From positions 6,448,001-6,512,000 of the forward strand of contig CM106586.1 in NCBI GenBank assembly GCA_048013815.1: a stretch of 64,000 nucleotides of DNA. Direction: 5' to 3'. The stretch comes from Setoptus koraiensis (lineage: Eukaryota; Animalia; Arthropoda). This document shows positions 31,243-56,600 of this stretch, one piece after another. The notes under the pieces are model-generated. The model was not told the origin of the DNA and ran no database searches. It saw only the letters and a program-made list of their open reading frames with translations. The number at the start of each line of letters is the position of its first letter. Positions within the stretch are counted from its first letter, which is position 1. A program made the position numbers and the translations under genes.

Positions 31243-33143
31243 GTAAGTTTTTAACCGACTCACTCTGATTTTATGTTGCAATCAACATGACGATTATATC
31301 TATCACTATCATTGAACTATCATTGAACTATCATTGAACTAACTATCGTTGATCTGCTTCGAAATTGTTGTCGATTATCAGGCTCGCCTATTCGCATGAT
31401 AACGGTATAGTGATAGTGGACATCATCCAAAAGTGCGTCGTTATCAATGCCAGCACTAGCGAGTTGCACGGCCCCAATCACCACATTGGCCAACGTGATA
31501 TAATTCAATCGAGCGGGCCTAAATCCTCTACTAGTGGTGGTCAGTCGATACTGGGCAAGTCGCCCAAGAGAATGAGCAGTACATCGTCGTCCGCGGCTAC
31601 TATCCAAGCGACAGATTCAAGCAATATTGTCAACAGCAGCTCTAGTCAGGACAATCACAATCAAATGGATTTATTTGGCCAACAACAACGAAAATCACCT
31701 CCATTCGAACAGGTAAGTGATAACATGCGATGCAATGATATTTTGCTCACGCTACTCCGCTCAGCTGCCTCGCTTAATACCACCACGCAAAATACGCAAG
31801 CAACAAAAATATCAGAAAGAATGTGAATGAAAAAAAAATATATATATATTTATTATTGTCGACACACATTCATTCAAATACCGATGATGGCATCATCAGA
31901 TCAATTGATAGTGATGGATCAGTTGATCGTTTAATCTGCACGACAAATCGACAAAAAGAAAATTGCTACAACAACGCCCCGTCACCCTACCGTAACCCCA
32001 TATCCTGCCCACAAAGGGTGCCTTGTCCCCGAAAACCCACAACAATCTTGCGCTTAACACGCAACAATCCTTTTAGCTGGCCAGTTGGTCTGTGAAAAAC
32101 TAGTCCAGCTGAGATACGATTTTCAATGGCACTGGCCATTGTTTAATGGGTGATTTCTCAATCTAGGCGCTTTTCGATCATGTCACAACACTCTATCTAG
32201 CTACATTGTTTATCCGGCCGACATAGATACTGACAATGATATCGAGGGCCGAATCACGTGTTATCAAGTAGCACGCTTTCGAACAATAAACTCAACAGCA
32301 GAGTATGACCATAGTTAATCCACCTATATCCTGACACTGCTACTATTTTCTGAATTCTCGCTTGTGCCAAAACGCCAAAAAGACAGAAAGTATCGTTGTA
32401 ATGGGTATGGCAGCGACATTTGCATATCAATGTGGCCATACGCGCCTATTCATGAGCAGTCATCTTGGATTTTTCTTATTTGTTTTGACACTGAACTGCA
32501 CTGGTGGGGCCTCTTTTTTACATCCTGATTGTGACCTGTGATCCACCATAATAGTAACAATAATAACAATAATGATAGCAGTAAAATTGTCGCCTGCGAG
32601 CAGCGCCCAACACTCGGGCCCCAAAATTGACCGCATCAGTTATTTAACACACACAATTGTATGATCAATGGGTATTCATTATGGCTCGCCGAGTGAAATG
32701 TCACCTTGGCACACACACTGGCACTGGCACTGGCACGATCGCGGTTCCGTGAGGTCGGATATTTGCGTCGGTGCGCGATAATTTCGTCGGGCGAGACACC
32801 TTTGCCCAGTGTGTGTTGTTGCGCAATATAGGTAAAGTAATCATTTCTCGGCGGCAAAGAAATGGATAAATGCACATATAAGAAGAGTGTGGTGCGGATA
32901 TTTATAGGGAGAGCGAGTGTGCTTAGCAGCGAGTGTGTTACGCAAGCCAAGGGCAGCGTGCTATAAAGTAGAGTGGCGCCAACAACGGCGCCAACAGCAA
33001 CAACAGCGCCAACAACAGCAACAACAACAGCAACAACACAACATATCGGATCGGAAAAGAAAGAGACACACACAAATATAATATCTAGAGCGTGATATCA
33101 GTCAGTTTGACCCAATTCACGTTCGCTCACCACCAACAGCAGC

Positions 33144-33198
<55 letters not shown>

Positions 33199-36100
33199 TT
33201 TATTTATTAACCAATACACAATACAATACAATATATCCTCTGGCCCGCTGGTACACACAGTGCGTACACGTATTGTGGGGCGCTCGCGATATCCCCAGCT
33301 CGGGCCAATATCGATAGTGTGCGCGCAGCGTTGATGACACTGATCGCAAATAGTAATCACCAGTCTATCTTGCCAAGCGGAGCCTCGCCGCGCCGCGCAA
33401 AGCTGCGCCAAACCGAGCCGCGCCAATCCAAGCCGAGCCGAGCCGATTCGAGCCTAGCCGATTCGAGCCGAGCCAAGCCGATTCGAGCCAAGTCGAGCCC
33501 GGCCAGCGCAGTTTAAGAGGCCGTAATTTCTGCACGCTTCGTAGAACTCGGCTGCCCTTTGCGCTGCCATGGCTGCCAATGCCGCCACAAGTGTATAACG
33601 GGACTTTTCAAGAATTGTCGCCCGGTTGTTGGGCGCCCGTCAGGCCCGCTGCGCCCACACATTGGCCCCAACAATTGGCGCACAATTCCGGCAGCTCTCA
33701 CTCGCTGTTTGTCGGCGCAACGATTCGCTGCACCAGATAAGGCAATGAGCAAGGCAATGAGCAAGGCAATGAGAGCGAGGGAGAGAGAGAGAGAGAAATC
33801 TGGAATGCGTTCCTCGGGGGCCCCAGACAGCGGGGGCATAAAGTATAAAATATTTCCTCGTTGTTGTTGTTGTTGGCCGGTTATTATTATTATTGCTGCC
33901 GCTGCCGCTGCTGCTGCTGCTGTATACATGACGAAACAACATGATGAGTGACATGTGTATAATATTATATTATATTTGTTTATCAAATGTCACACACACA
34001 CACACACACTAGGGCGAGTTTCATAGACTGCATTACATAACTGACTGCACCAATTGCAGTTATTCGTTTGGCAATGCGCGGACAAGTCGATGCACTTGTG
34101 CCCGCCAGTGTTGCCTTTAAACTCATCTGTGTATTTGAGTGTGTGTACCAACAACTCAAATTACATAACGATTTGTGTGTTTCATTGTGTGTGTGTGTGT
34201 GTTTGTGTCCGCAGAGAGTGTGATGGATTTAATGCCAACTACTTGTGTGTGCTGGCCAAACAACAAATCCACCGACCAACCGATTTGGGTGACGCCGGTT
34301 TAGCTTATTCACGTTTATTTGCCCACTTCCAGCGACCGCGACAGCACCGCCTGCATCAACAACGACAACAATGACAACAACGACGACAGCAACAGCGACA
34401 ACAACAACGACAGCAACAGCGACAACGACAACGACAACAACAACGACAACGACAACGACGACAACAACGACAACAACAACGACGACAAAGGCAACGTGAT
34501 GAACACGGCCAGCGCGAGCCATCACGACTCATTGGGTTCCGCTGTCGGTGGCGGCCGTTGTTGTTGTTGTCGCTGGTGCAATTTGACACTTGGTGCGCAA
34601 TTTCCGAGAACAATCCAATAGAGCGCACACACCAGAAGCCCATATATATCGCATTTCTATTGTGATGGCAGCATCAACATTCATCATATTTGCTTTAGTT
34701 ATTGTCACACTCACATACAATCTTTATTCTTTTTAGTTTTCACGTTGTGTCTATGCACCAATGGAGGCACTTGCACTTGCACTTGCACACCAACAGCAGT
34801 TAGCATGCAAACAAATATCAAATCATTTAGTTTTTCAAACTCTTATCTTTTACCTTTTTGTTGATATATCCTCTCATATGCTCACATGCCCATGCCGCAC
34901 GCCGCCCGTTAACCTGCCACCAATGCCACCACTGCCACTTGCCCGCTGGCCTCACCTGTCCAACTGCCACCAACAAACGAACCCTCGCCACCCACTTTCG
35001 TGTGTGTGTGTGTGTGTTTTCAATTGTTGTTGACGTCATTGTTGGATGGTGGACACAAATATTCGCGCACGATTATGCACATATCCGCCCTTCGAACCCG
35101 ATCACCTGGCATGCACACTCTCTCGCACCGTAATGAACGAACGAACGAACGAACCAATGAAACGAACGAACGATCCAATGAAACGAACCAACGATCGGGC
35201 CCCAAACAACCAACGATCCAACGAAACGAACCAACCCACTATTACACTCGCCCGCTCGCCACTGCTAACGGCTAACGGCTGTCGCCTGTCGTCGACGCAA
35301 CACGAAAAACTATCTGACATCACGAACGCGCACCATTAACCTAGAGAAATATTGACGCGATTAAAGAGGAGGAGATGCCGCGATCGCCAGCCAGCGGCTC
35401 GTCGTCCCACAACCAGCCAAACGATCACTTGGCGGTCGTACAACAGAAAGCGGCGGCGCCGGCGGCGGGACTGCCGCCGGAACCCGTCGCGCCCACCGCG
35501 GAGGCGCCGCCCGTTTCGGAGGGCCCCATTGCGCCGCCAAGACACAAGAGACGCTCAGTGCAGATCGATGAGCTGCCGCAGCAGCAGCAGCACGCTGACC
35601 AACAAGCGCGGCATCAATTAGATCAATTGGATTTGCTGCGCCAGCACAACAGCGCTGCCGACGCCGACACCGGCAACGCCGACGCCGACGACGTGGGCCC
35701 CGATTCGCAGCGGCCCGATTCCGCCGCGTCTAATTTGAGCCAGGCTGCAACAGCCAGCGTGAGGCACAAAACTGCCGCCAGCAGTAATTATCCGCCCGTG
35801 TGTTCTCAATCTGGCAAGCTGGACCAGCTGCTAGAAGAGCAGCCGTTGTCTAGCGAAATATTGATTGAAAAAAACCAAGAGCAGCAGCAGCTCAGGTGTC
35901 TAGGTTCCTATGACAACAGCGACGCGGACGGGTCCCCTTTTCGGGAGCCTATTAGCAGTGTCGGCGGCGGCGGCAATGGAGGCGCCGCAGCGAAACAAGT
36001 GCCAATAAATGCCCCAGCCGGTGCCGCTAATAAAGACAGAGGAGGGCGCCGCGCGGACACGCCAGATAAAGTAACGCACCTGCCCCCCAACCAGCAGCAA

Positions 36101-39100
36101 CAGCAGCAGCAGCAACAACAGCAACAACTGCAGCAACAAGACACAACAAACAAGCGGATAAAAGAGGAGCCTATAAAGATGACTCGTTGCCATTCTCTGC
36201 AGGGCCAATCAATGAGCAGCGCCAATGCCGGTGCCGGCAACAGTGGCAAGCTGGGCGCCGCCAGAGTGGCCAGCATTGATTCTTGCGTTAAGAGGCCCGT
36301 AAGCGGCCCCAATGACGACACTGCAAAGAACTGGCAACAGCAGCGACAAGAAAAAGAGGGAGCCCGAGCTGTTGTGTCACAAGCAGTAGCGGAGCCGCCG
36401 GCTTCCGGCTGTCAGGGCCAGCGCCAAGGATTGCCACAGCCCACCATTATGGGAAATATCTACACCATGTTCTTGAGTAAATTCTTTGGTGAGTTTTTGT
36501 TTTTTTTTTCAAAAATATCGGCCCAACTGCTATTTATCTGCTTGAATTTAACAAACAATTGTTGTTTGTTAAACGTTCAGGCAGGCAATTTATATATGAG
36601 GCCGCACTCAAGTTGCCACTGGCACACTTGCCAGCTCACAATTGGGCCTCAAAGAGTGAGCCGATTGCGTTCGGTTTCGCCAGCGCGGCGGCCACCTATG
36701 CGTGCCAGCGCGAGTTACAACATTGAAGAGAGCGACGGAACACGACTTAGACTTGCATACATTCGGACACGAGTATGAACAAGGCAAAATGATGATAGTT
36801 GCATCTTTGTGTATCTCTTTGTAGTATTTCTGATGCTGGCCGGATAGGTGCCGCCACTACACATGCCAGAGGCCGCGCAATAATAATAATGGCGCCAAAT
36901 TATAGCCTGCGCTCGTGTCTCGCGTCGACTCGCTATCTGGCCCTCTGGTGATTAATCAGTCACTTGCACTAATTAATGATGCAGCAGCCAAAACTGCCAG
37001 CCAGCCAGCCAGCCAGCCAATCTTGGCAGTACATTTATACAACTGCAATGTTTATAACTGTTGTGCTTATAACTATCGTGCTGCTGCCATAGCTTTTGTG
37101 CGCGTCGTCGTGTTGTTTATGGCCAGCTTGGCATTGTTGTGTAATCTGGCAAGCTTGTCAGACATACGTTACGTACAATGGCGTTGCCAGAGAATGTCGG
37201 CCTAGTGCCAGCGAGCGAGCGAGAGAGAGAGATTTTGATCAAAATAATGTCGAATGGACAACAACTGACAACAGAGATAGGGCGCTGCTCGTGCCACTGA
37301 TCTAGTTACGATTGCGCATGGCCGGCCAACGAGCCAGCTAGCCGAGTTAATCGTTGTTACGCAATCAATCATTGACTCATTCGGCTTCTCACAAAAAGCG
37401 GGGCGCGCACTCTTACGCAACAACTTACGATGGATTAGATTTTTGCTCGTCTTCGTCGTCGTCGTCGCGCTGGTTGTGGCGCTAGTTGTCGTGCTGGTTG
37501 TCGTGCTGGTTGTCGCGCGGGAACGTCATCATGCGCGCCGTGAGAGTAAGCGCACGGTCGCAAGCAATTTGAATTGTTGCCGCTGCTGTCGCCCCAGACG
37601 TCGCCAGTGTCTTGCCAGAGCCAGTGTCTTGCCAGAGCCAGTGTCTAGCCAGCAAAACAATGCGCGCGAGGGGCCCCCGTTTGTCTGGTCGCAGTCGATT
37701 CGTCGGGGCACAAGCGCAGCGCCGACACAGTGCAGTGTGCGCTGTAAGAAGCCCCACAAAGCATCCAATTATAACGGCATCGTCTCCCGAGCAAAGCCAC
37801 CTTCCCCCGGCGATTGGCCCCGCCAGTTGGCCGATTGGGGCCCCTTGCGCCCTTCGCGCCTCTTGCGCGATCCGCGCCTAGCCCACATCGAGACACGGCC
37901 GGCCCACATCGAGATACGGCCGGCCCCCGCGACGCACGCGACGGCCACTAGCCACTAGCCGCGGTCACAAGCCGCGGCCCGGCGCTTAGGTGACCGGCGC
38001 CGGCCAGATAAGGCCCCTTTTTGGGCCCTTGTTGTCGTTGCTTGTCGCCGTCGTCGCCGTTGTCGCCGTTGCGGGCCCATTATGCGCCCTTATATCAGAT
38101 ATATATTATATTACTATACACACAAACAACTGGTATATCTGATATAAACACATACACATCGGCGACACGAAGCAAGTATCAACTTTCAAGGAGGCCAGCG
38201 CTGATCTACATGCGAGATTGCGCCAATGGATGGGCCCCCACTGACTGACAAAATATCTTTATTAGCAGCGAGGCGCGCCCGTGTGTGTTTACCAACTTAA
38301 TAACAGGCACGTTGTCAACATTGAGTCGCCCCATTCATTGTTTTATCTTGTTTGGGGGGGGGGGCCAGTGCGCGGCGCTATCTCTGGGCGAGATCTCGCT
38401 CGCTCGCTTGCCCGCTCGCTCGTTGTGTCACGCGCAACAATGCACACTGTGTGGACACTCTAGATACCAAACATATATACAAATGTTATGTAATGTGTGC
38501 GTGTGTATTTGTGCACAAACAAACACACACCCTCGAACAACCCGTACCCGTCGCGCTGCGCCCGCTGGACCCCGGCACCCGTTACGATGCAACCGTTATG
38601 ATGCAACCGTTATGGTGCAACCGTTATGGTGCAACCGTGACGGAATAATGTAACGGAGCGCGCATGCAAACACGTACCACTAATGAATAGTCGCCGCCGC
38701 CGCTGCTGCCGCCAACCCAATGAATAGGGCACCAGCCAACTGTTTACAATCGTGCAGCTACAACAACGGCAAGGTGTTTGTTTGGGTATTTGAGTTGTTG
38801 TCTTGCCGTTGTTGTTGCCGTTGTTGTTGCCGTTGTTGTTGCCGTTGTTGTTGCCGTTGTCGTAGCTGTTGTTGTTGTCGTTGTTGTTGCTGTTGTTGTT
38901 GCTGTTGTTGTTTGCCGTTCAGCTGGCGCTGTTTCCGACACGAGCGATTATAATAGTTTGTTTATAGGTGCCAGCTCGCTGGCCAGCAATGTTTAATTAA
39001 GGCAACGGTTGCGCAACTGCTGTCGCACACATGAATCAATGATTAGCTACTTGTTCAAGTGGTTATTGTTGTTACACTGTATATATTGTTTGTATTAAAA

Positions 39101-42100
39101 CAAACGCAGCAACAGCAGCAGCAACAAACACGAAATTGCAATCAAGCTGCCATTACGGCCCGCACTCGGATATCTTGCTGCATGGCTCGCTGACCACTGG
39201 CTGACACCAGCGGCTCGGCGGGGCCCCAGCTTGTCGTTGTTCCAATGTAAAGTGTGTGTGTGTGTGCCGTCTGTGTCCTTTTGTAATAATGTTTCTATCT
39301 TGTTTGGCGATCGCGCGCCCCTCGTAATGGTGTCTTTTCTCACGCACGCGTTATTCTCTCAGAACGCGTGCAAATAGGAGCCCCCAAAACGAAGCCACGG
39401 ACAGCATGTAACAGCCAGCATATAACAGCCAACTTATAACAACACGACACACAACAGAGCCAAGAAAGAGGCCACCGGGCCCCAATTCCTGGCTGCCTTT
39501 TTCCGGCTGGCCAACGTTGTTTTATTTCTATTTTGATTATTGTTGTTGGCGCTGCCAGCGATTCAATTTTGAGCTGCCTGATTATTGCTGTTAGCAAGCG
39601 CGCAGCCAGACGACAACTATTGTGTTTGTGTGTCGTCATGTTGTTATTCTTTTTATCCATTAATGGCCTCTATCATTAACGAGCTGCTGCTGCTGCCGCC
39701 GCCGCTTGCCGGGCTCGCCGAGGGCCCGCAAGCAGCGCCGAGGTGACAAGCCCAGGGCACTTCTCTTGCGGGCCACAACTAGGGGCCCCAACAGAAGAAG
39801 CTCTCTCTCTCTCAGAAGCGTGTTGCCGGCAGCGCAACAGCCAGCCATCTTGTAATCTAAATTGGATTAATGAATCGGCTCCCGATGACACCATAATGAT
39901 ACTCATCTTTTGCCCCTTATCTCGCGCTGTGTTGTTGTGTGTGCTCTGCTGTGCAAGGCGACATTGGGGCGCCAACATTAGTTTCGACAACATGGCGCAC
40001 AGTGTGACAAGTGAATTAAACTATTCTCCACATCCAGCCACCATATCTAGCCACCAAATGCAGCCACCATATCCAGCAGAGAGATCCACACCGAACGCTG
40101 CACCAAACAAACGCTGTTTGCTTGTTAGCCTTGGATCGCGCGCGCCCCACAGCCCAGCAAGACAAAGAGAGCGAGAGCCAACAAAACGACGATAAGGCGA
40201 AGAGGGGCGACAAGGCGAGACGAGGCGAGGCGAGAGAGAGAGAGGCACCGAAAGAAGAGGGATAACCATTAAAAAACAAAATTGCAATCATTACTCTTGG
40301 CGACAAATCATCATTACTGCACAGCGCAGCGTTTGTTTTGTCACGTGTTTTAGTGGCAATCTTGACAAGTGCTAACTAGGCAACATTATGTGACAGCTTG
40401 AGCCATTTCTTCTGGCTTCGTCGGGCTTCTTCGGCTTCTTCGGCTTCTCGGGGCTTCTTCTGGCTCCCTTGAGCTCGTTGCACGGCTCGCTTGCTGTTGC
40501 CGGCGAAGCCATTGCTGGCCGTCATCGTCAGCCACTCTCTACTAGCTCTCTTCTAGCTAGCTTCTGGTTAGCTACTGGCTAGCCTCTGGCTGGCTACTGG
40601 CTGGCTACTCCGCTGGCTGGCTGGCTACTCTAGTCGCTAACGGGCTGCTAGTGGTAGCACGGGCCAGCATAACTGGATATGATACAATTGGCGCTTATTT
40701 CAGATATAAGCAGCATTATTTAAGCTGCATTATATAAGTAACGGTATAAAGGCGCGGAGCCGTGCCGAGGGGCCCCAGTGTGTGCTCAAACTGGCTTGAT
40801 TTGATTCAACCAATTGGTTAATTTCGTTTATTCTGACTTGTGAGTGATTCAGTGAGTCACTGTGCTCAATTGGCCAGCGCGTTGCAAGCGCCTCCAACGA
40901 TCGGCCGACTAACTGGCGATTTTATCCCAATTTGCCAGTCTGTCTTCTGTTACGCAACACACTCCTTTGATGAACAACCTTTGATGGCACCTTTCATGTT
41001 GCTGAAACGACCACAAAATATAAATGCAAATTTGACACTAGCCGGCTTGTCAGTTAGCTCGTCAGCCAGCCACCAACACTAACTAACTAACACCAACGGC
41101 AAGTTGGTCTGTTTGTGCAGCAACAAGCTGCTAATTAGCTTGATAATTGTGTGTTTTTGTTGTTTCCATTAGCAACACGAACAAGATTGTTGTGTGTTTT
41201 TGTTGTTTGTGCTGTGTCGGTCTGCTGCAGTGTGCCAGCTCGACACAAGCGCCCCAACAGCCACCCTCGAACCCTAAAATCGCTAAAAATTCACAATCAC
41301 AAAACCCAAAATCACAAAACCCAAAATCACAAAAACCCACAAAACCCAAAATCACAAAAACCCACAAAAAACCCAAAATCACAAAAAACCCACAAAAAAC
41401 CCTACCCGCAAAGACCTAAAAGCGCCGCTCACCAACGCTATATGCCGCTGTCCAACTGCCAATAGCTTGCCAACTGTGTCCAACTAAACTCACTCATCAG
41501 CTGTGTTAACCATTAAATCTCTCAAATCAATCTATGTGATTATCTAATCACGGCGTTATTATTACGTCACACACACAACGAATGTTAGATGCCCATAACG
41601 CCTTTTTCGTCTGCATCAACTCAAAATCAGCGTTTCAGTGTAAGTGACTATGGTAGCCAAAACGCAAACAACAACACTTTACAACAACAATCATCGGCTG
41701 ATTATTTGCTGCAAAATAGTGCAACGGCAACAACATCAACAACAACTACCACTGCTGCCATTGGCGAAATAGCTGCAATTAGAATAGTGCAATCGCCGAC
41801 GCCCCCATCAACACTGACTCTAAGAGACAACAACAACAACAACAACAACAACAATAACAACAATAGTAATTATAACGGGGCCACATCTCCGTCGACCAGT
41901 CAATTGAACAGACAATTCTTACACAATCTGACAAGTGCGTCATCGTCGGCCGCAACAAACATCATAAACAGTGTCACGAGTCATCATCATCATCACCATC
42001 ACTCCTTTTCTCACCATCATCAGCATGCTCACGCCAATCGCAGCTCCTTGGCCGGTCAGCTGTCCGGCTCACAGGAAGTGCTCGGCCAAACAGCAGCCAG

Positions 42101-42213
42101 TGGTAGTTGTAATCAGCAGGCCAGCGGCCAACAGCAATCGCCCGGCCAGCATCAGCAAGACAACATTAGATCATATGGTATGGGCCCACTCACCTGAGCA
42201 ACTTGACTAACAA

Positions 42214-42248
<35 letters not shown>

Positions 42249-45200
42249 ACGTCTATCCGCTGCTCGAATCTGCTTCATATCTGCCGCAAATCTGCCCCAT
42301 ATCTGCCGCGAATCTGCCGCGAATCTGCTTCATATCTGCCGCAAATCTGCCTCTCATCTGCCGCATATCTCATGCGGTTTGTAACCGCAAACGCAATCAC
42401 CGCGAAACCACTATCAATACTTACCCGTCGCTGCTATTCACCGCTGCTATTTACCCGCCGCCGCTATCTACCGCCGCTATGTACCGCCTCTATGTACCGC
42501 CGCTATACACGCTACCGTCGCAACGCAATACGCACTACGGGCCGCCCGTGTGCTCGCTCACCCACTGACCGCTCACCTGCGCCAACGCGCTCACCTGTCG
42601 GTCGCTCACATTTTATTCGCATTCATTCGCATACGTGGTGTCGTACGTCGTGTCCACGACGCAACCAACATTTACGGCCTGCGCGTTGCATAACACACAC
42701 ATACCGTTATGTCGCCGACACCGTTATGTAACTCACCTGTCTGCCCATACGCCCGCCTGCCTACCTGCAAACAAACCGCAAACCTGCTGCTTCGCTGCTT
42801 ACCATGACCTCCATGACCTTTACGGTAACTTTATTGGCTGTGTCAACTGTCTCTGCTCAACTGTTGCCTCAACTCATGACGCAATCTCTCTGTCACGCTG
42901 TGTGTCACGCTTTGGCACGCTAATCGCATCTCACGAATTGGTCGTCGACTTGATATGCCAAATTGCCTTATTCTAATCTACTTGACATTACTCGAACGGT
43001 GTGCTCGAACGCCGCGACCCCCCAACCAAAATTGATTATCTCGCGTAATTGAAATCCAAACCAAAAATTGAATCTGGCGCCACTGTACCACTCGCGGTTA
43101 CCTTGTGGTTACCTGGCGCTCACCTTGTGGCTACCTTGTGGCAAATGTCCACTTGCTGTGACTTAACTGTGTGTTTACCTGTTTACTGTTGTGTGACCCG
43201 TTTGTTTATTGTGTGTATCATGTCCGTTTATTATGCAATCTTTAACCTTTAGTCGAGTCCATTTCAAACTGTAAGCCAAGCCGTAGCCTCCCAACAACAA
43301 CAGCAACAACAACAACAACTGCTGCTGCAATCGTCGCTGTCCAACAGTTCGTCTGGTCAACTAAACGGAGCGGCCGTATCGTCGCCGTCTAAAAAAGCAA
43401 CAACAGCAACCAGCCAACGTCCACAATCGGCGGCAATGATGCAACGTCAGATGAGCACAACAACATTGGGTAGTGCAAAGTATAATTTCAACAGCAACAA
43501 CAACAACAACAGCGGCAGCACATTCTCTGGTGGCAGCAATAACAGTCGCAATCACCGCTTGTATCAGCGTCAAATGACCGCGTCACAATTAACAACAACC
43601 ACCTATGACAGACAACAACAACAACAACAACAAACATTCCAGGCACAACAGCTGACCGGAAGTAGCGCACAAATTAATGGAATGTCGTCTAGTTCACATT
43701 TGACCATGTCAACTAATTGCTTAAATTTGGCCATGTCGTCAACAACAACAACAGCGGCAGACAAACAGGTAATTAGTCGCCGTTCACCTGTCCAACAATC
43801 AGCCAATGCATCGGGCCAATCAACAGGTGTCAATGGTGGCGCTGCGGCATCATCTGGGTCGTCATCGTCATCATCAACGGCGGCGGCGGCAGCAGCAGCA
43901 GCCGGAACAACGTCAGCGGGCGGCCGCACGGGTTCGTCGGGTTCCGGCGCGTCAACATCGGGCTCGGGCACGGCCACTGGCTCGTCGGGACAAAGCACCA
44001 ATAAGCGCATAATAAGTAGGATGTTATCAATACACACAATAGGCAGTAGCAGCAGTAGTAACGACAAAAACAACAACACCAGCAGTAACAGCAGTGGTGG
44101 TGGTGGCGGCGCTGGCGCCGGTTCCAACGCTTGCGATTCTGGGCCCGATCACCGTCATCATCATCACCACCATCATCACAGTCAAGCATTTGCCTCAGGT
44201 AATTATCGCAAGTTTTTTGTTGTTGCATAATTGTGCATAATTGTGCATAATTGCGCAATTTTCAACTTTTGTCACTTTATGGCGGCGCCATTGCATGCAA
44301 ACGGTCATTGCATTGCTCTTTCGATGCAGTGACATGTCGATGTGGCGGCGTGTCGATGTGGCGGCGTGTCGATGTGGCGACATGTCGACGTGCAGTGGGC
44401 TGACGATGTCGATTTTTGGTGCCGACTCACGGCAAGCTCGCCGACTGGCCGTCGATGCGCCGTTAATGGTCGCAAGCCAACGGCCTCATGCGACAGTAAT
44501 GTGGCGCTAATGCCACACTATCGCCCCCGTCGTATTGCAACAGTAACAGATGAAGGGGCCCACAGCTCGTCGTGGAGAGGCCCGTGGTTAGGCCGCATTG
44601 GTAGCCTTTTACATTGCACTGTCGGTTGGGTGCGCTACGCAGCGCATGCCGTAATACGCCTAGCGTTGGCGGCCCAAATAGCTGGGCCCATTCACTTGGC
44701 TACAGGCCGTACTGTCGCCAGCGATCTTGGCCACACTGGCCAGCCGGCCGTTTCGTCTTGAAGGTCGGCCTATCAGCGGCAGAGTGAGTGTACAACTTGC
44801 AGTGACGTAATAGATGAGATGATGTCATTTGCAGCGCGCGCGCAATCACGTCGCACGAGAAACGGGTCGCCTCACCAATCATCGCTCGTTCTCGTTTACA
44901 AACGGAAACGGATGATCGATTCGAGTGCGGCCGTTGTGCCGCTGCACGGGCCGGGCCACTAAACCAGTCGGTTTTGGCTAGGCAATCGCGCGATAATAAT
45001 AATAATCGTCGTCGTCGTCGTGGCCGGATCCATTCGTCATCGTTGGCCGGCGCTGGCCGGCGCAAAGCTCAGCGCGCGGCCACTTCGGGCCGGCAAGTTG
45101 TCGCCTCGACTTACAACGGCAAGCAAGCGCCAGTATGGCACCAGTATTATGCAGTATCATGCAGTATCATGCAGTATCATGCAGTGTTATGGGGCCCCAA

Positions 45201-48200
45201 AAGCAGCGGGCTGGCCAGCGTGGCGAGCCCAGTTGCAAAATGAATTGGCGCCGTTCGCTCCACTGGCGGCCGTTTGTGTTGGCCACTAGCGCCAGTATAT
45301 TTAGCATAATTGCTATTGCAATTGTGATCCAGTTTCACTTTCTCTGCAGCCATGTTGCGCGTTGTGACATAATCATCATAAGACGACAACCAGTAATGAT
45401 GCTGGCCCTGTTATGCTAATGCAACGCGCGCCAGCCCACAAAACTGGCCAACAAACCGCTGCTTGTTATGCAATGTCAACTGGCACCATCATGAGCCCGT
45501 GCGCGACCATCAGTGTGGCGCGCCAACAAACGAGCGCCTAACGAGCTCTCTGCCGGCTCGTGCTGTTTGTTTTGCCAGACCAAAACGGGGGCCAGTTCAT
45601 TGTAGTCTGGTTGTTTTTGTTTTCATTTTTATTCTTGGCCCCCTCTCTCCGAACGTCGCTCTCTCTCCGAACGTCGCTCTCTCTCCGAATGTCGCTCTCT
45701 CTCCGAACGTCGCATTCTCTTCGAACATCCATCTCGCTCTGGCCGCGCACATACATCTTGACAAGCGGCCATGTGTGCTGGCTGCACGAGCTCATTTCGG
45801 TGCGCGCTCGGCCGGGCTCATTTCGATGTCGGGCTGCGGCCAGCTACAATATTGCATAATAATCCGACTGTAATAGCCTGATTATTATTATATTGCGCAA
45901 CACACACCCACCAACTCTGTGCCGCTGGCCCTCGTTGCGCTCAGCGAGAGCTTGGTGAGCACAGCGCGAGCTTGGCGAGCGCAACGCAACGAGCAGCACA
46001 CCGTGCGCTTCGCAGTGGACAGCTTGTGACAATGGCTCCCCCGTTCCGATATCCGCGCCACTCGAACAGAGCGGCACACACATTCGGAAACAGCGTCGTT
46101 TTGACCACCGGCCAAGATTGTTGTCGAGTTTGTGTCATGACGAAATTATGCAAATTTATCGTCTATCCAAACACGCGCCAGCGTCGCTTGTTGTTGTGCG
46201 TGTTTGCAAGACACGAGCACACTGGCAAGCGTGCACTTGAGCTCTCTCTCTGTCAGTGAGGGCCGAGCAGCGTCTCACTGATTTGTTGTTGTTGTCGTCG
46301 TCTGGCGATTGCCTCGACGACGGGCCCCTGATGACGAGCCAGTGACATTTGTTAAACAGCGAGCTAGTGCAAATGTCAGTGGCGTTTGTGTCGAGCTGAA
46401 CTTTCAAGTGTGCGTACTTGTGCGCCCGGCCCAATGAGCGCCCCGCTCACAATGCGGCGACCGGGCCCCGTCCCGCGCCCGCCGACATGCTGAGATGTGA
46501 TCGATATTCGTCGCTGGCGCTCGCAGCGCCGAAGCGACAGTTAAATTACTTTCCACTGTCTTGTTGTTATTAGTTGTCGGTCGTTGCTTGGCTGCCGGCT
46601 CTCGGCTCTCAATTCTCGGCTCTCAATCCTCGGCTCTCAATCCTCGGCTCTCAATCCTCGGCTGGCCGGCTGCGGGCCCGGGATCGCGAGCGACAAGCGG
46701 CGAGCGGCGAGCGACCAGCCGGCAGACGGAACAGCCTGCCAACAGGAAAGAATTGCCATTTGGCGCCGAATTGAATCGCATTGGCGCGCATTGGATCGGA
46801 TGCGCGAGCCAATCGAAGGGGCCCCAAATCGACATCGTAATGGCGCATTGTAATTCAATCGAAACGAAGCGACACGACGAAACGACTAAACTCAACGATG
46901 CACGCCGAGTCTCGCCGGCGAGCGAGCGTCAGTCATTAGCGAGCACAATGATCATTAGTGCTGTGCATCCATTGACTGTGTCCATATGCCACTCTGCGCG
47001 CACACACACACGCACGCACAACAGTTATCTAACATCGGTCTAGCCAGCCGAAATGCGAAATATACAGCTTATACGAAGCTTACATAAAGCTTATGTGCGC
47101 TTGGCGTGGTTAGACGCGGGCCGGCGCAGAGATATACTCAATTAGACAATTAGCGCCGGATGTTGCATTTTGTACAATGCGCGCAACATCAATCAGCAAT
47201 TGTGTTGTTACGGCCATTGTGTCGGCCATTCTGTTCACGCTAGCGCGCGCACACTGCGCGCCCAAATGACTTTATGAACGGAAACTAACTACTTCTGTTC
47301 CGTTTTGTCCCCCTCGCCTTAGTGTGTGTGTGTCACACACACACACACACACACACCAATTCATCTCATCATCATGGCAACTCGACATTCAACTGCTCGC
47401 TATCCACGCGTGAATACCGTTGATGCCGACGATCGTGTTGCGCAATGTTGTTGGCCTCATACCAAGCGTATATGTACCGTAGCGTATGGCTCGATATATG
47501 AAAGTCGCGCAGTAGTGAAAGTGGCACAGTTGCGAGCGGCACACGCACGACGCACGCACACGGGTGGCGTATGCGCGCGTTGTCCTATAAGTGCTGTCGA
47601 ACATGATTACTGCCGGCGTTGTTTATAAGTGAGTGCAATTTTTTAGTTGAAGGTGCCATACAGGCGAGGCGAGCTGCCTTGCTGGCTGGCCAGATCGCTG
47701 TTCAGACGAGCGCGCGCTCAGTGTGCACAGCACTGTTTGCCAGCGCTGTGCACACTGAGCGCGACTAGTCGCGCGAACCTAGCGCCGTTCGCGACTAGTC
47801 GCACAAACCTAGCGCCGCTCGCGACTAGTCTGGCCACCGTGTTGTTGACGGCCGCATTGTGGACACTGGCGCCCGCTGGCGCACACATACCCGCCACATA
47901 CCGGCCGCGCACCGGCCGCATGCCGGCCGCATACCGGCCGCATACAATGGCCGCCCGACGCAACCATACGGCGCCATATGGGGAGTGAGCCGAAGCGAGA
48001 GCGAGAGCTCGCCAGAACAGGAAACGAGCGATATGTGCGTGTGTGTGTGCGTGTGTGTGTGCGTAGTGTGCGTGCCTGTTGTGCCAATGCGGCATTAATA
48101 GCGACTAGCGCCTAGCTACCGGCCGCTGGCTGCTAGCGACCGGCAGCGTGGCAGATATCAGACCTGCGACAGCATGGCAAACATCGGGCCGCATAGCGAC

Positions 48201-51200
48201 TATCGGGCGCCAGCGCAGTGACTTTGGGGCGCCGGCGAGCAGCGGACGACGACGGATCCAGTTGGCTGAATCTCCGGCTTGCTGCTCGGCGGGGCCCCCG
48301 CTGGTGGCAGCCATCGGGCACTCCCATGGGCGAGCTAGCCGAGGAGCTGGCACGAGCGGCCGCCAGCTCAGCCGAACTCGACTCAAATGCATGTAAATCA
48401 GACACACAAGAGCGCACAAAATTAGCGACTTGTCCAACGGCAACAACAACGGCAGCAACAACAACAACAACAACAGCGCAACGACAACAACAACAACTAC
48501 TCAAACGGCTCGCTCGGGCCCGACGTCCAGGCCGCCCAAGCCACGCGGGCGACCTACGCAGCTCTATAAAGCTTTATGGGGCCCGTGGAGCTTCGCCAGG
48601 CCAACAATCCCTCATTTGAGTTAGCTCGGTTGTTCCCCTGTTGCCGGTTGTTTGGGCCCGTTGTCAGGCCGTTGCGTAACGCCTGTGCGCCAGTTACGTC
48701 GGGCCGGTGCCCGTCGTTACGCAACTGGCGAGTCGCGCCAGCCTGCCGCGTAACCCTTTGGCGCTACCAACGGCAACGGCAAACGGCGACTGCAAACAGC
48801 AACTAGTTCCTAGGTAACTATTAAGTTAGGCCGCTAATAGCCGGCTGGTCGGAGCAACGGCAAGGCCGACTAAGGGCGCGACGACAAGTGCAGGCCCATT
48901 ACCTGTCAGACAGACACGGGATAAGAAATATTCCGGCGCTGGCGGCTATAATTAAACGGAGCCGAGCACGCCATTGCTGCAACCAACTATTGCAACTCGT
49001 GCCAGTATTACGGTGCCACGGTCTCACTCGTGACACGTTGCGTTTTGTCTGATGAAATAAAAGCACACACAACAGTCGATAAATTGATGATTTAACGCAC
49101 GTCTGGCGCTTGCGAGATGCAAACAAGCGATCGCGGTCGTTTGCACCATTGCGAGCCACTGTTACACAGTGGCCCCAACAGCAACAGCCAACAGCAACAA
49201 CCAATGGCAACAACCAATGGCAACAACCAATGGCAACAACATTGCATAACGTCGGCCGGCCAGCGCGGCACAGGTAACTCTCGAGCCGCGACAGGTAACT
49301 CGCGACAGGTAACGCGGCACAGGTAACTCGCCAGTCGCGACAGGTAGCGCCGGCAACATTGCCCATTAATTTATCGGCAAACAATGTTGTCGTCTCAAGT
49401 CTGTTGCAATTTCTGTCCGTCAGTCGCCCTGTCTGTCTGACTGTCTGTCTGACTGTTTGTCCGTCTGACCGTTTGTTTGACCAACAGTAACTGTCGGGTG
49501 TTGGTGCAACGTCAAGCGCCAACACCGCCACCTATTGCACATACTCGACGGCTGACGGTGACAATGTTGACACTGGCTGGCTGGTCGGGCGGCCATTCGA
49601 GCCACTTTATAGATATTTGCGTTACATTACATACTTGCGTACCCTTACGCACGCTTGTGTACGCACGTTACGTAACAATGGCAACGGCGCCAATTTTGAC
49701 CATTGCAAAATAATGATAGCCATAATTGTTTGCGACGTGTGTGTGTGTCTTGCATTGAGATTACAACTTGCGTAACTTGCATTGACCAAACCTGGCAACC
49801 GTAATAGTGAGTGTGCCAACGAAAAGTTGCCCAACAAACCGTCGCAAGAAACCCTAGGTAACTCCAACCATAAATACTGTAAATATATAAATAGCATTTG
49901 TGACAGTTGTAATGTGCGGGCAAGCGACTGTTTATATTATTTTAATATTATGCCCATTGCCACACTGTAGACCCAGTAGACAATGCCGGACAATGGTGAC
50001 ATAATGTCACTTGTGTGCCCCTATAGGCCGTTGCTGTCCAGACCGACGCGCTGCCAAGTGACTGGCGAGCCAATCAAAAATACCTCACGCTCTCTGGCGC
50101 TGAAATACCCCGGCTAATGACACACTGATCAAATAGATTTAATAGATATCCTGTAATGCAAGCAAACAAACGCCGCCCAACTCGCCTGGCCCGCCCAACG
50201 CAATAACGCCTAACGGAGTGGGGCGCCCAACAAACTGGGCCGCCTAACGCAACTAGCTCAAATTGCTTGCAATGTTAGATGCCGTTAGGCGACTGCTGCC
50301 GGGCCCCTCTCACTTGTCAGTTGCATCATTGGCCATTGCACAGCATTACTTATCTAGACTTTACACATTTTGTGCATTTAGATATCTCGCACACACACAC
50401 ACACATTTGTATATATATATACCCGCCTACTTTGGGCCGGTCCACCTCTAGGCGGCCTAGATCCCCTAGGTGAGGCGAGTCTCGTTGCATTTGGTTAGTG
50501 TTTTCCCCAATGGCATATAACGGGATATATATATATATAAGTACATTTATACAGTTGTGTGCGATATCAAGTTCAGTTATTCAGTTGTGTGCCAACCAAC
50601 TTGATATTATATAACTGATGATGTTGTGTGTTTGTCTATTTGCAGTTGCAAATTTGCGAGCTTCTTTTGCTTGAGTCGCACACACCAGCCAGTGATTTAC
50701 ATATTGGCTGGCTAGCCAGCTCGTCAGGCCGCCCTAGCGTTGGGCCGCCCTTGCGTTGGGCCGCCCATTGCCACTGTCACTCGGTTGGCGCCACTACAAC
50801 TGACAACAATTGCCGCGCTAGCGGCACCAATGAGGCCCCGGCACCGATGGCCGGCCTAAAAGTTGTTGTTTATTTTTCTTTTTTTGGCAAATCTCGTCTC
50901 GTGAGCTCGTTTGTGTTGCCACTGTCTGACAGTGAGCGTCTCACCGTCAGAGTGACTGCCAGCGCCATTTTGCCCATTTTGCCCATTTCGCCCATTTTGC
51001 AGAATGTGCGCATTGTCTGCACCGGCGACGGGGGCGGCCCAACACTTTAGGCCGCCTCCAAATCATGGAATATGTATTTATTCCGTCAATTTATTCCCGC
51101 TCCTCGCCCGGCTCCGCCGCCGCCGCCGCCGCTAAATGGGAGCCCTCCCCACAGCCCACACACAGGCTGGCTGGCGAGTATGGGGACGAGTAGCAGCCAG

Positions 51201-52545
51201 TGACACATCGCCAGATAGATCTGATCCATATACATGACGAGCATGTCAGTTTACACTCTATAATCCGCGCTCGTATATAATGCTCGTATAATACTTGTAT
51301 ATCTGCGTGTATTTATACTTGTATTTATACTCGCATTTATACTTGTATTTATACTTGCACACATACACGCGGGCGGCCTTATCTGGCGGCTCGTGCCCGA
51401 GCCAGCCGGCCCGACTCGCCTCCGCTGGCCGCTAAGCTGCCGAGCCCCAGAAGCTGGCCCCCAGAAGCCGGGCCCCAAAAAAAGGAAATGAATTGTTTAC
51501 AATCGAATTTATTCCGTTTGATTCCACTGGTGCCAGTGGCGAGCCATTATTGCGCCAGCTTTATGTCTGACCAAGCTGCCTTATATCCGCTTGCAATGCA
51601 GCCTGTGTGATGCATCTATTCGCATAAAATTATATCGCCGGCGCTCGCTCATCATGCCGCCACGCCATGCACTGGGCCAGTGGCATGAAAATGGCAAGCT
51701 AGCTGACTGATGAGATAATACAACGGCAGCGCCAACAATGGCCAACGATATAATAATGTTGTTATCGTCTCTCCTATTATTATATCATCGCGTGTGCAAC
51801 GCGGAGACGTTGACTTTTGCACAAGTGCTGCAAAACTGGCCAAATCTCTGCAATGTTTCACTTATTCCACACTCTGCCGTCTAGACTCGGCGATCAACAG
51901 CCAGACTCGGCGATCCACAGCCAGACACCGCGATTCATCGCGGAATTCATCGTGCTGCCACCGGGCCGGCGAAAACTCAGGTGAGATGCCGAACTGGCGC
52001 GTCTGTGGCGGGCCTCTGCTGGCCTCGTTTGAACGGGGGCCTCTCGCCAGACAACCGGGGACCCTCGTCGAACGCGCCGAATGAATCGCTAATTTTTCCG
52101 ATCCGACGCAATTCCGTGCCGACGGATCGCATCGTGTCGGGTCGCGGCGGATCGCAGCCGGTCGCAACGGATCGGATTTGTAAGAGTCGGATTAGTGTTG
52201 CTGGCGGCTCAATGGCTGGCTCCGTTTGACTTTGCAGCCCGTTGGGCGACTGTCGCTGCAGCTCGTTTATCGCTGGCATCATGATGATGCCAGCCTCGTG
52301 ATAGCAGCATCTCAGATAAATCATTTCTCTAGATCATCTGGCAGGCATCTAGGTATCAACTCGCTACAAGCGCCAGCAACAACAATGGGGCCGAATATGG
52401 CTTACAGAGCCATTGTTGGCATTCGCAATTTAAAGCGCAATTTTATTGAATTTGCCAGCCATAACGGCGCGCTATAACTGGCCTTTCTTTTGCTATCGCT
52501 ACTGCGTTCGCCTCTGATTTTGGCTTCGATTTTGCTTTTGATTTG

Positions 52546-52576
<31 letters not shown>

Positions 52577-53587
52577 TTGCATCTAACAAGTATCACAGCA
52601 CAGCCAACACACAAGCTGCAACTAAAGCTCTATTGTGCGCCGCATCATCCTATATAAACAAACAACCAAACTAGCTTGGCAAACACAGACAAACAAACAG
52701 TTGGATATTTGCAGCCAGCGATGGCTACACTGAACGGTTTATGGTATGGCGAGCCCTTTCCAGCACACATATCGGCGCCGCAATCCGTTGACTGGCCGCC
52801 AGATAATCTGGCAAGCTAATGATTGGCTCGCTGGTTGCGCTGATTGGCCCATTGGCCCCCAATGTGACATGTTGCCAGCCGGGCTTGCACGGGCTCTTCG
52901 CTGGAGCTCGTTGCAGGGGCTCCCGTCGTGAAGGCTGGTCGTAAAGGGGCCTATATGATGTGTGTTTGCAGTGGCCTAGTGTTGTGCCGGCCCAGTGTTG
53001 TGCCGGCCCAGTGTTGTGCCGGCCCAGTGTTAGCCGGGCCCAGTGTTAGCCGGGCCTAGTGTGGCACAGCCGGGACCGGCCTAACTGGTGGCTGTGTGCC
53101 GCTGCACGAGTGGCCGCGCTTGCCGACATCCTTGGATGGACACAAACACATTATTAGATTATGAGAAACAAGTGATTCGCGATTGTTTGTCGCCAAACCG
53201 GCCTAACCAGCCGAGCCCGGCTGGTTAGGGCATCTTGCCGAGCGGCCCGTGAGTGGTTCGCTGCAAAGGCCGACTACACTTTAAGTTGGCCGACCCAATC
53301 GTGCCGGCCAGCGTGCTGCCAGCCCGTTAGGCCGCCTTAGCGGTTCCATCACATTGACTGATCTTGTTTGTGTGGAATGGGGCAACGGGCTGGCCTATGG
53401 CCAATTAGACAAGTGCGCCCGACAAGTGGCCGCGCCGACCAATCAATTCATGCCATCCAGTTGTGTGTGGAGCCCCGGCCGGTTACCTCGCCCGGCGATT
53501 CTTTCCCCGTTCGCTGGCGTCTCTTTGTGCCGGCTCGGGCTGGCGTGTTGCTGCAACTGGCTGCTGGCGAGCCAGCCAGAGCAGTCG

Positions 53588-53676
<89 letters not shown>

Positions 53677-56600
53677 GCTGTTGTTGTCGCTGTTGTTGCT
53701 GTTGTTGTTTTGGTATTTCGCCGCCGTGGCAGCACCAGCACATTAGCGGCGCCCCAGCCGGCAACGCAAGCTCAGCGAGAGATAAAAGTGCCAGCCAGCC
53801 AGGCGAGCAGTTAGAGGGCTAGCCGAGAAGCATCACTCAAGAAACACTCGTCTAATTTGAATTGAGACGTTTTGAGATGACGGCATCGCTCTGACATTGT
53901 TGTAAATGCCTCTGGACGAGCGCGCGGGCCCCCGCAACCGACAGCCTCGCTGCAGCCTAATAGACAAGTGACAGGGGGGGCGCCGTTTAACAGCGGGTTG
54001 TTGTTGCTGCTGCTGCAGCGCCGACAATGATTTGCGAATCGGTTGCTCGCCGTTGTTGCGTGTTAGCTGAAGCAAACGCGCCAGCGAACGCGCCAGAGAA
54101 GCCGAATCGGAATTCATTTCCATTCGAATCGGATCATTCTATTCAATGGTTCATTGCCGCTCGCTTGCCACACACACACGCACACACACACACTCGCACA
54201 CACGCTTGCTATTCATGCCACGTGAATTGGTCATTTCGTTTCATTGCGTCATTTTGTTGTTTGTTGGCATTTGTGTTTTGTTGGCGCCGTTGAACAATTG
54301 GAGTGCGTGTGTGTGTGTGTGTGTTCTGGTCAGCAGTTTGGCTTGCTTGACAGAACACACAAACACAAACAAGAGTTGAAGTAAGAGACAGACAGACGCA
54401 CGAGCAAGAAGAAGAAGAAGAAGAAGTTTGCGTAATCGCGACTTCTTAATGGCACCAGCGCTCGCCAAGACATTGGGGCCCCTCTTGTGGCCTCACTTTT
54501 ATCCCTCTTTGGCCTGTCGCAAAGGCGACCTAGAGGACGGGCGGCCCAGCGAGAGGCCCGCTTTGCTTGGCTTCTGGCCAGTCCAAGTTGGCCCTAACTG
54601 CTCCAAGTCGGCCCTAACTGGTCCGAGTTGTGCCTAACTGCTCCAAGTCGGCCCCAACTGCTGTCACACGCACACACTAGGCGGCCCGCTCGCTGCTCAC
54701 CTGTGTGCCATCATGGGCACACTTTGCGGCCTTTGGGCGCGTATAATATTGCGTAATATTGTCGCACTAACGGAGACAGACAGACAGAATATACTAAACA
54801 TTATGTAGCCAGTCTAAACTGCGCGCCACAGTGCGCAATCATCTTTGCCGGCCATATGGGTCGATTGAGCCGCTGCACGGGCCCGTCGCTGAGGCCCCAG
54901 CGACTCGGCAGCGGCGCTCGGGGGCCCGATGTTGGGGCCGCCAATAAAACTGGTCACTTTTAGTGCATTTATATCGAGTTATTAGAGTCAAGTGTTGTGT
55001 CAGGTTAAACGGCACAGCAAGCCAGCCGGCCGGCCGGCCAGCGCCAGAGAATATTTACCGTGCCAATCCAATTAAATGCGCAATCCACTTGTCACACACA
55101 CACACACACACACACTAACCAATGATGGCAATGTCAACCAACTCTTGCTTCGCTCGCTAACTGGCCCCCTTGCCATTAGCAGCGTTGGAAACATTTGAAA
55201 CTGTCGAAGCCTAGGCCGGCCTAACTTAGGCCGGCCTAGCAGAGAATGGCGGCAGCCACCGGGGCCCCTTTGGGCGCCGTCCGATCCAATTGCCTACTTC
55301 CTGTCAACTAAACAACTCAATGTTGATCGCTTGCTGTTGTTTAAATTGGAGCCACTCTGTGCCAATCAATTCCAATTGAGCTAACTTTGCCATTGGTGGT
55401 GCCACGAGCCGGCGGCGGGCCCGCCACTCAAGCGGCCAATCTCGAGTAATCGGCGGCGAGCGGCGGATTGCAGCATTTAAACAAATGCTGCAAATCCTGG
55501 CATGGCCGCCCCAAACACTGTTTATGGCCCATTTGGCTGTTTATTATTTGCGTCGCCATCTGGCGCACATTTTGCAACACTAGCAATTGCAAAGTTTATG
55601 CTTTGCACAAACTACTATTTATACTGTACACTGTCACAATATTACTGTGTACATATACACCGTCTACACAGCTACACACAGTGAGCTGGGCCCCATCCAG
55701 CTGAGGGGCCCCATCGAGCTGCGGGGCCCCATTGAGCCGTGCAGCACTCGAGCGTGTACAAAGCGTAATGCACACAATAACAATAATAGCAACAATAATA
55801 TATTATATTACCGGCCGTGGGCTGTGATGGTCGGCTAAATGGGCAAATCTATGAATATGTAAATAGATGATGTATACAAAAATAGATGATTAGATTATAG
55901 TTTGGCCCGGGTTGCATCGCTTGGATAATCGCTCATCTAATTTTCATTTTGTCTAGACTACCGACGAGAGCTAGAGAGCGAGAGCGAGAGAGAGAGAGAC
56001 GAAATGCAAATTGACTCCACCTATTTGGCCGCGTGTGAGCATGAATAATTGATCAAGCACCAACTAATACCAGCTCTCTATACTAATCTCATTTCGTCCC
56101 ATTTGGTCCCCTTTGGTCCCATTTGGTCCCATTTGGTGGCAACGTCACAATGGCCAAATTCATATTTATAAATACGCGCGCACGCGTTATATCCATAAAT
56201 CATGTCTTGGCCAATTGGCCATTGATTGAAACCAACACCACCGACCGTGACGGTGTGCTGCGATGGGGGGACAAATTGCCGCAAACAAACCATAAATAAC
56301 AGACAAAATTGATGCCTCGTTTACGCGTTCCAGGAGCTCCAGTTGTTCGAGCACCACCGATCAGGTGCAAAACAGCACCTCCATCGAGTCCATTCAGTGC
56401 ATTTGTTTTGTCGACAGTCACCAGCAGCAGGGCAAGTCAGGTAGGTTACGCGATACAAATCGTTGGTGTTGTTGCGTTGGGGCCCGCGGGCCCCAACGCA
56501 ACAACACCAACAACAATAATGCACTCTCGCACGCTCTCGCGCTGGCCGGACGCTAATTAATTATCTATCTACTGTTGCCATTCTTGCCGTTGCCATTCCC

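Follow-up and report, generated by a model that had tools for sequence, protein, structure and literature searches.

How can a gene be read across a loop whose flanking exons cannot be joined in frame? The question is raised by a window of 64,000 nucleotides, the whole stretch of DNA analysed here, from Setoptus koraiensis (GenBank assembly GCA_048013815.1, contig CM106586.1, positions 6,448,001 to 6,512,000 of the forward strand). Judged by its sequence, the gene is the tomosyn/STXBP5 gene (Lgl family) of an eriophyoid-type mite; tomosyn is a brake on nerve-signal release. We consider it probable that the variable loop of the mite protein is filled by choosing one of an array of alternative cassettes, namely cassettes 1 and 3 and a probable cassette 2.

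The exon before the loop, exon 2, ends in phase 0 and the next conserved exon (the DKID exon) opens in phase 1 with AG^AC AAA ATT GAT (^ marks a splice junction throughout), as a first, sequence-only reading of this DNA had proposed. That reading placed three open segments between the two exons, and its coordinates proved exact: each segment is 3n+1 nucleotides (nt) long, with an AG before it and a GT after its terminal G (Table 1). The terminal G plus AC rebuilds the Asp codon of the block DKIDASFTRSRSSS, of the form DK(I/L)DxSFxRSRSSS, which stands right after the variable loop and is common to mites, ticks, spiders and the horseshoe crab. The three segments are open in frame 0 only, with 9-17 stops in the other frames, and all lie adjacent in one intron region with the same phase-0 entry and phase-1 exit, as do the members of a mutually exclusive cluster. 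Our local frame count reproduced the predicted products, which share one downstream model and measure 1934 amino acids (aa) with cassette 1, 1749 aa with cassette 2 and 1868 aa with cassette 3. The claim that using no cassette or two breaks the frame likewise holds arithmetically with the sites seen, and the phase-0-in, phase-1-out logic is kept in relatives. Frame incompatibility is thus the mechanism that would forbid zero or two cassettes: a productive mRNA needs a net 3n+1 nt from the array and therefore, with the sites seen here, exactly one of its members. The AG of every phase-0 acceptor belongs to the in-frame TAG closing its open reading frame (ORF) on the upstream side, so that these acceptors are in part set by the definition of the ORFs. 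Chance does not account for the ORFs of cassettes 1 and 3 (477 and 325 codons), since the longest ORF in shuffled introns had a 95th percentile of 252 codons.

Conservation in other species is what identifies two of the segments as exons. We compared the window with the tomosyn loci L001-L009 of relatives, in every one of which the cassettes stand on the tomosyn strand and in the same order. The exon upstream of the loop ends Q^GTAAG in phase 0 in 8/8 species, and the DKID exon of L001 has the acceptor caag^ACAAAATCGAT in phase 1, as in the window. Homologues of cassette 1 are found as plus-strand ORFs after exon 2 at six loci (L001, L004, L005, L006, L007 and L009); they carry the motif (G)P(I/V)APPRA(R)KR(Q/R)S and a tail ..SSLFTKLx, and exactly at that tail stands a phase-1 donor, xxG^GTAAGT (GTGAGT in the window), in 7/7 species. 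On this conservation we take cassette 1 to be a true coding exon.

Homologues of cassette 3 occur in L001, L004 and L007, with the motifs QSRF(T/A)xNS(M/A)FQRQLS, (L/P)FQRQxTASQL and KNKRIISRMLSISAIHT. A profile made from the four sequences retrieved 20 homologues at E<=1e-3, 15 of them at E<=1e-10, from 1.84 billion protein representatives. All 20 are short stand-alone genomic ORFs, and most end in ..DQ(V/M)(P/A)-G-E.., which is what reading through a G^GTGAG donor in phase 1 produces. Eleven motif residues are invariant in the resulting alignment of 23 sequences. From that alignment AlphaFold2 returned a mean pLDDT of 48.7 and a pTM of 0.18 for cassette 3, in agreement with the view, taken from the sequence at the outset, that the cassettes are disordered. 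In the window, L004 and L007 the cassette 3 ORF opens at ..(T)TAG^ preceded by a tract rich in pyrimidines or T, as a true acceptor would; in the window the acceptor is TTTAG^ and the tract before it T-rich. The conserved block, moreover, reaches upstream of the methionine chosen by gene callers, a residue that is alanine in three species. Cassette 3, too, is by these comparisons a true conserved coding exon, and its distribution marks it as specific to this mite clade.

Cassette 2 is the least certain member. Between cassettes 1 and 3, L001, L004 and L007 each have a plus-strand ORF with a phase-1 G^GTAA donor at its end (...QPSSSQN+G, ...SPSHHQQN+G and ...GGSASAN+G, respectively); that of L007, at 387 codons, is beyond chance, and that of L004 is one of just four ORFs of at least 100 codons. 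The composition of cassette 2, rich in S, T, N, Q and H, resembles that of the other loops of the gene, whereas junk ORFs in the neighbourhood are rich in Cys and Arg, and its runs of Thr, His, Asn and Ser draw on a mixture of synonymous codons. Cassettes 2 and 3, or their counterparts, lie 220-1440 nt apart in all four species. We conclude that cassette 2 is probably an exon and a third option. A tblastx comparison of the whole intron with the introns of relatives found no further conserved coding block.

As had been claimed, the cassettes are not detectable duplicates of one another, cassette 1 being unrelated to the others. Descent of cassette 2 from a diverged copy of cassette 3 was considered and rejected: a MAFFT alignment of the two is collinear, but the hhalign probability for cassette 2 against the cassette 3 family is 0.4%, and a Smith-Waterman z of 4.6 between the two owes its excess to homopolymer runs common to both rather than to kinship. 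Homologous duplication is a typical although not obligatory trait of mutually exclusive clusters, and it is absent from this one. Frame-enforced mutually exclusive exons are familiar from cases such as FGFR2 IIIb/IIIc, in which using both exons or neither shifts the frame. Whereas pairs of that type are homologous duplicates that encode a folded domain, the options in the mite would be unrelated disordered segments.

The ancestral exon junction DLY^G is present in other arthropods, and from it the Tetranychus model X2 joins straight to the DKID exon, cassette-free. In 7/8 species of the mite clade the Gly codon at the LY^G junction is GGC, GGG or GGA, and because it lacks GT the bypass is closed in these seven; the LY^G route that Tetranychus uses is gone in the mite. 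As for the reverse error, in L001 and L004 the stretch from the start of the cassette 3 ORF to its conserved block is devoid of phase-1 AGs, although phase-0 AGs are plentiful there, so an in-frame join of cassette 3 to the phase-1 donor of cassette 1 or 2 is impossible in these two species. For RNA pairing of the docking and selector type, the search yielded nothing convincing, its one match being an AT-rich 9-mer whose duplex z ranged from -0.7 to -2.6. The proposed three-way exclusive array has fared unevenly: cassettes 1 and 3 are conserved exons with conserved phases, and the predicted two-way exclusivity between them is well supported, whereas cassette 2 has an ORF within chance and no significant homologue, and a third way through it is plausible.

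Several observations weigh against the one-of-an-array choice, and it is on these that the alternatives draw. The ORF of cassette 2 (202 codons) is within the range of chance, since 0.46 ORFs of at least 196 codons are expected on this strand of a shuffled intron and a junk-like ORF of 225 codons does lie nearby at 37281-37955. Comparison of cassette 2 with its counterparts in L001, L004 and L007, and of those with each other, gave no significant similarity (z <1.3), only loose motifs being recurrent among them. Add to this that its donor, GTATGG, is the weakest in the gene and that the intron is full of tandem repeats, and it becomes a serious, if unlikely, proposition that the switch is two-way only, cassettes 1 and 3 being real and cassette 2 a chance open frame in a microsatellite-rich intron. 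What speaks for cassette 2 in return is the recurrence of a third plus-strand ORF with a phase-1 donor at the same relative place in three relatives, one of them beyond chance, together with its loop-like composition and mixed codon use. The strain X2/X3 points in the same direction: it differs from the window at 15 sites in ~4061 nt of covered intron and at none in cassettes 2 and 3 (1389 nt); three of the differences lie 21-264 nt past the cassette 3 donor. A binomial estimate for the lack of variants gives p ~0.01 for the two cassettes together and 0.16 for cassette 2 alone, which has none in 533 nt and is not significant by itself; because the variant events are clustered, the lack is only suggestive.

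Exclusivity itself is challenged by the phase-1 AGs inside the start of cassette 3, of which the window has five in the first 60 codons and L007 has one, so that chains of 1+3 or 2+3 are arithmetically possible in these two species. Tick models, furthermore, stack several small phase-1-to-phase-1 cassettes (INGLC.., GNPQ..) in series; because ticks combine cassettes at the same junction, exclusivity is not universal, and the short distance between cassettes 2 and 3 would suit such a chain. We nevertheless regard it as improbable that some mRNAs of the mite chain two cassettes through an acceptor within the downstream one: two relatives lack any such site upstream of the conserved block, the ORF opens at a pyrimidine-rich ..TAG^ acceptor in three species, and most of the internal acceptors would drop the conserved QSRF..FQRQLS block or shift its frame. 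Direct evidence of splicing was sought and not obtained. The three sequencing runs that contain the locus are DNA contigs and show no spliced joints (38700-44600, 5901 letters), the sole joints in them being repeat artefacts at CAA runs; no spliced eriophyoid tomosyn protein of any length was among the matches to the cassette 3 profile; and a 1023-aa exon-1 ORF used as query against candidates of 563-1790 aa matched exon-1 ORFs only and no spliced tomosyn. Gene callers annotate the homologues as stand-alone ORFs, cassette 2 begins TAG^ATG, and the cassette 1 ORF runs on for 287 nt beyond its donor to a stop, so that an ATG at 35375 read to 36778 would encode 467 aa. All this would fit nested transcripts, or alternative first or last exons, in place of internal tomosyn cassettes. 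Yet between species it is the splice donor and its phase that are conserved, not a stop codon, and the sequence past the donor is unrelated; the conserved block of cassette 3 starts before the methionine on which the stand-alone calls depend; strand and order follow tomosyn in every relative; and the cassette of other arthropods that cassette 1 resembles is internal in mRNA-based models. We therefore rate independent transcripts as very improbable, and retain the choice of one cassette from an array as the probable reading.

That the loop is a site of splice variation in mammals and in Drosophila, as had been noted when the array was first described, agrees with the literature (PMC3948876; PMC8612732). 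Close precedents lie in arthropod gene models at NCBI, which show the junctions ...RCRSPxxDQ^ and ^(D/N)K(I/L)DxSFSRSRSSS with alternatives between them. One is a disordered 'long' cassette of 240-470 aa with RPPRRK, PPPRRK or RPQRRE and a hydrophobic tail (Tachypleus X3, Dermatophagoides X1, Cryptotermes X2, Schistocerca X1, Procambarus X2), and a second is a short INGxCxSPT...RRxKSQ cassette; long and short cassettes swap in models of Tachypleus (X3/X6), Dermatophagoides (X1/X3) and Cryptotermes. Insects have a third alternative, DSDGDxSCLKYLF, and X2/X3/X4 of the termite Cryptotermes already form a three-way set. In insect and dust-mite isoforms the residue at the junction alternates, Asn following the long cassette and Asp the others; the first base of the split codon must therefore come from the cassette, and the phase-1 split is ancient. 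The mite has the junctions and the split first codon in common with other arthropods, and would share with them the replacement of one cassette by another. Cassette 1 agrees with their long cassette in position, size, a PPRxKR motif and its tail (..LFTKLx^ against ..MVKMF^ and ..NLMRRLN^), and it is on motif and position that it resembles a mite version of that cassette; against this, the hhalign probability for the pair is 0.3%, not significant, with the best local match on the PPR motif. A proposal that cassette 3 is the orthologue of the short INGxC...KSQ cassette found no support (hhalign probability 0.08%). Where other arthropods have short alternatives to the long cassette (13-110 aa), the mite has large clade-specific ones and lacks INGVC...KSQ. 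The description of the locus as a larger three-module switch accordingly overstates its novelty, since three alternatives at the same junction are present in the termite models and a cassette of 240-470 aa, which cassette 1 resembles, is present in other arthropods. On these comparisons the array is an expanded version of a switch that is already visible in arthropod annotations.

Drosophila tomosyn has mutually exclusive exons 13A and 13B in the loop (Sauvola et al. 2021, PMC8612732). As in the mite, they belong to the same gene and form a disordered loop that projects from the WD40 scaffold, and, in a further likeness, one version is conserved across insects while the other is poorly conserved. 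The fly has two options in an intron-rich gene, whereas the mite would have two or three, of 196-381 aa, in a gene whose upstream part has collapsed to two exons; and whereas the expression and function of the fly isoforms have been measured, the mite array is known here from its sequence. Mammalian tomosyn has seven isoforms, with a PKA site at S724 and a SUMO site at K730 in the spliced region (PMC3948876). In the b/m/s variants of tomosyn-1 and -2 (Groffen et al. 2005; Williams et al. 2011; Baba et al. 2005, as cited there), alternative splicing affects only the variable linker that joins the propellers to the SNARE motif, as it would in the mite; unlike the mite, mammals include or skip small exons of tens of residues and make no obligatory choice among large cassettes. 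We found no sequence similarity between the mammalian spliced segments and the mite cassettes.

The assignment of the gene to tomosyn follows from the LLGL/WD40 propeller in exon 1 combined with an R-SNARE in the last exon. The exons were searched one by one and joined only in the local count of frame and length. Exon 1 matches Pfam LLGL (PF08366, E=1.4e-21) and many WD40 propeller families, and is 40-50% identical to named mite and tick tomosyns, its best named relatives being acariform mites at ~40%. The best matches overall, at ~50% identity, come from Logan, JGI and ENA contigs and comprise 31 exon-1 ORFs, 851-1023 aa in length. A Drosophila origin of the gene is rejected, given that acariform mites are the best named matches and that exon 1 is free of introns. 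The last exon is 44-56% identical to the C-termini of tomosyns, which hold the R-SNARE motif, and it matches Pfam Synaptobrevin with E=2.6e-5 at 24.4 bits, slightly below the 26.4-bit cutoff. Counting frames over all AG/GT choices near ORF borders left just one consistent set of splice sites downstream of the loop, that of the five exons from the DKID exon onwards in Table 1. With each of the other eriophyoid-type sequences recovered, the exon-1 ORF of the window species shares only ~50% identity, while those sequences share 50-74% among themselves; such low identity is consistent with an early-branching lineage for the window species.

Table 1. Exons and cassettes of the tomosyn gene, in window coordinates (^ marks the splice junction)
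Feature	Position	Strand	Description
Exon 1	28592..31242	+	ATG and ~884 aa of WD40/LLGL double propeller in a single exon; donor TT^GTAAGT, phase 2
Exon 2	31382..31712	+	...IVDIIQKC... propeller strand and start of the variable loop; ends RKSPPFEQ^GTAAGT, phase 0
Cassette 1	35345..36488	+	1144 nt (381 aa + 1 nt), predicted disordered; motif GPIAPPRHKRRSV; tail ...YTMFLSKFF + G^GTGAGT, phase 1
Cassette 2 (candidate)	41589..42177	+	589 nt (196 aa + 1 nt), S/T/N/Q/H-rich; TTAG^ATG acceptor, TATG^GTATGG donor, phase 1
Cassette 3	43253..44198	+	946 nt (315 aa + 1 nt), predicted disordered; motifs MMQRQMSTTTLGS, RLYQRQMTASQL and NKRIISRMLSI; CAG^GTAATT donor, phase 1
DKID exon	56303..56440	+	(D)KIDASFTRSRSSS...; acceptor AACAG^AC, phase 1; first base of the Asp codon from the cassette
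Exon with ...QLWLGTSHGAVILISITMPDSDDNRVLQLQSV...	57006..57125	+	tblastn similarity to mite tomosyns; sole frame-consistent model
Exon with a further disordered loop and the last propeller blades	57574..58498	+	similarity to mite tomosyns; frame-consistent model
Exon with ...LCFSRNGHGLY...	58881..59113	+	similarity to mite tomosyns; frame-consistent model
Last exon	59348..59610	+	R-SNARE motif; ...KFKDKKWYQF, then stop codon

The layout of the gene is that of an intron-poor genome. Upstream of the loop 994 codons are contained in two exons, and the introns of the loop span 24.6 kb. In the eriophyoid Aculops 84% of genes lack introns, and the median intron measures 170 bp (PMC7738191); the Setoptus koraiensis assembly, of 47 Mb in two chromosomes, was annotated without RNA-seq (PMC11920263); and the Drosophila loop falls at coding exon 13 (PMC8612732). 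The loop intron region (31713-56302) compares with 7-9 kb in relatives (L001:13300-21322, L004:13530-20200). Its excess length is rich in tandem repeats (67 TRF rows), and most of it falls in the 12 kb that separate cassette 3 from the DKID exon. Rfam and tRNA scans of the loop intron were empty, and Pfam found nothing above its cutoff in the ten longest other intronic ORFs.

Some features of the intron and its surroundings may be recorded here. Over 106-127 nt, a (CAACGA/CAA)n array that precedes cassette 1 (34357-34488) shows 80-84% complementarity to two others, (TTGCCGTTGTTG)n at 38803-38919 between cassettes 1 and 2 and (GTT)41 at 53587-53709 downstream of cassette 3. Pairing of these arrays in the pre-mRNA could loop out cassette 1 or the whole array of cassettes; TTG-type arrays are, however, absent from the introns of L001 and L004, and the complementarity is for that reason probably a microsatellite coincidence. 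Between 38700 and 44600 the contig word depth swings from ~10 to ~222 over 6 kb in X2/X3 and is roughly even in X1; the swings probably reflect repeated low-complexity words or amplified DNA and not expression. With its ATG at 41589 right after an in-frame TAG, cassette 2 might also be served by an internal promoter, the possible product being an N-truncated tomosyn made of cassette 2 and the SNARE-bearing C-terminal half. On its minus strand (6608-6961), some 3 kb upstream of its tomosyn gene, L001 carries an inverted partial copy of tomosyn exon 1 that is also present in L002 and L003; it covers residues ~528-647, is 71% identical to the window protein and was called as a 103-aa ORF, and the window has no such copy. 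The order CSN2 (PCI domain), PAP2 phosphatase, tomosyn is found upstream in L004:1-5837, L005:1139-5076, L007:2647-6901 and L009:1141-3479.

The choice of one cassette from an array suggests the following course of events. The gene has lost nearly all the ancestral introns of its N-terminal half but retains those around the variable loop, and the loop would be supplied by the array of alternative cassettes, the G at each phase-1 donor completing the Asp codon. Each mRNA would take one cassette, and mis-joined forms with none or two would be frameshifted and presumably removed by nonsense-mediated decay. By analogy with the PKA and SUMO sites of the mammalian protein, the cassettes may give the loop different docking motifs for kinases or partners: cassette 1 offers PxxPxR followed by RKRxS, and cassette 3 three or four RxxS/T sites (FQRQLS, FQRQMT, KRIISRMLS). 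A change of motifs might then alter the regulation or the partners of the release brake, and one may speculate that the choice of cassette is specific to cell type. A bolder proposal, which we advance only tentatively and think less likely than not, is that the eriophyoids kept an ancient splice switch and enlarged it until one of three very long disordered modules, unrelated to each other, must be chosen, that the cassette 3 family with its invariant FQRQLS, FQRQMT and KNKRIISRMLSISAIHT motifs is a clade-specific, phospho-regulated docking region, and that an intron of 7-25 kb was kept because the choice is essential.

The phase-0-in, phase-1-out junction with its split Asp codon is, by this comparison, an old arthropod design, and because of it the alternatives of the loop replace one another rather than add up. 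Should the array prove true, the mites would possess a family of ~20 clade-specific disordered cassettes with invariant short motifs, mounted on a conserved regulator of synaptic release. The wider interest lies in the survival of a switch and its long introns in a genome stripped of nearly all its other introns; confirmation by RNA data would make it a clear instance of introns being preserved by alternative splicing in an animal genome that is among the poorest in introns.

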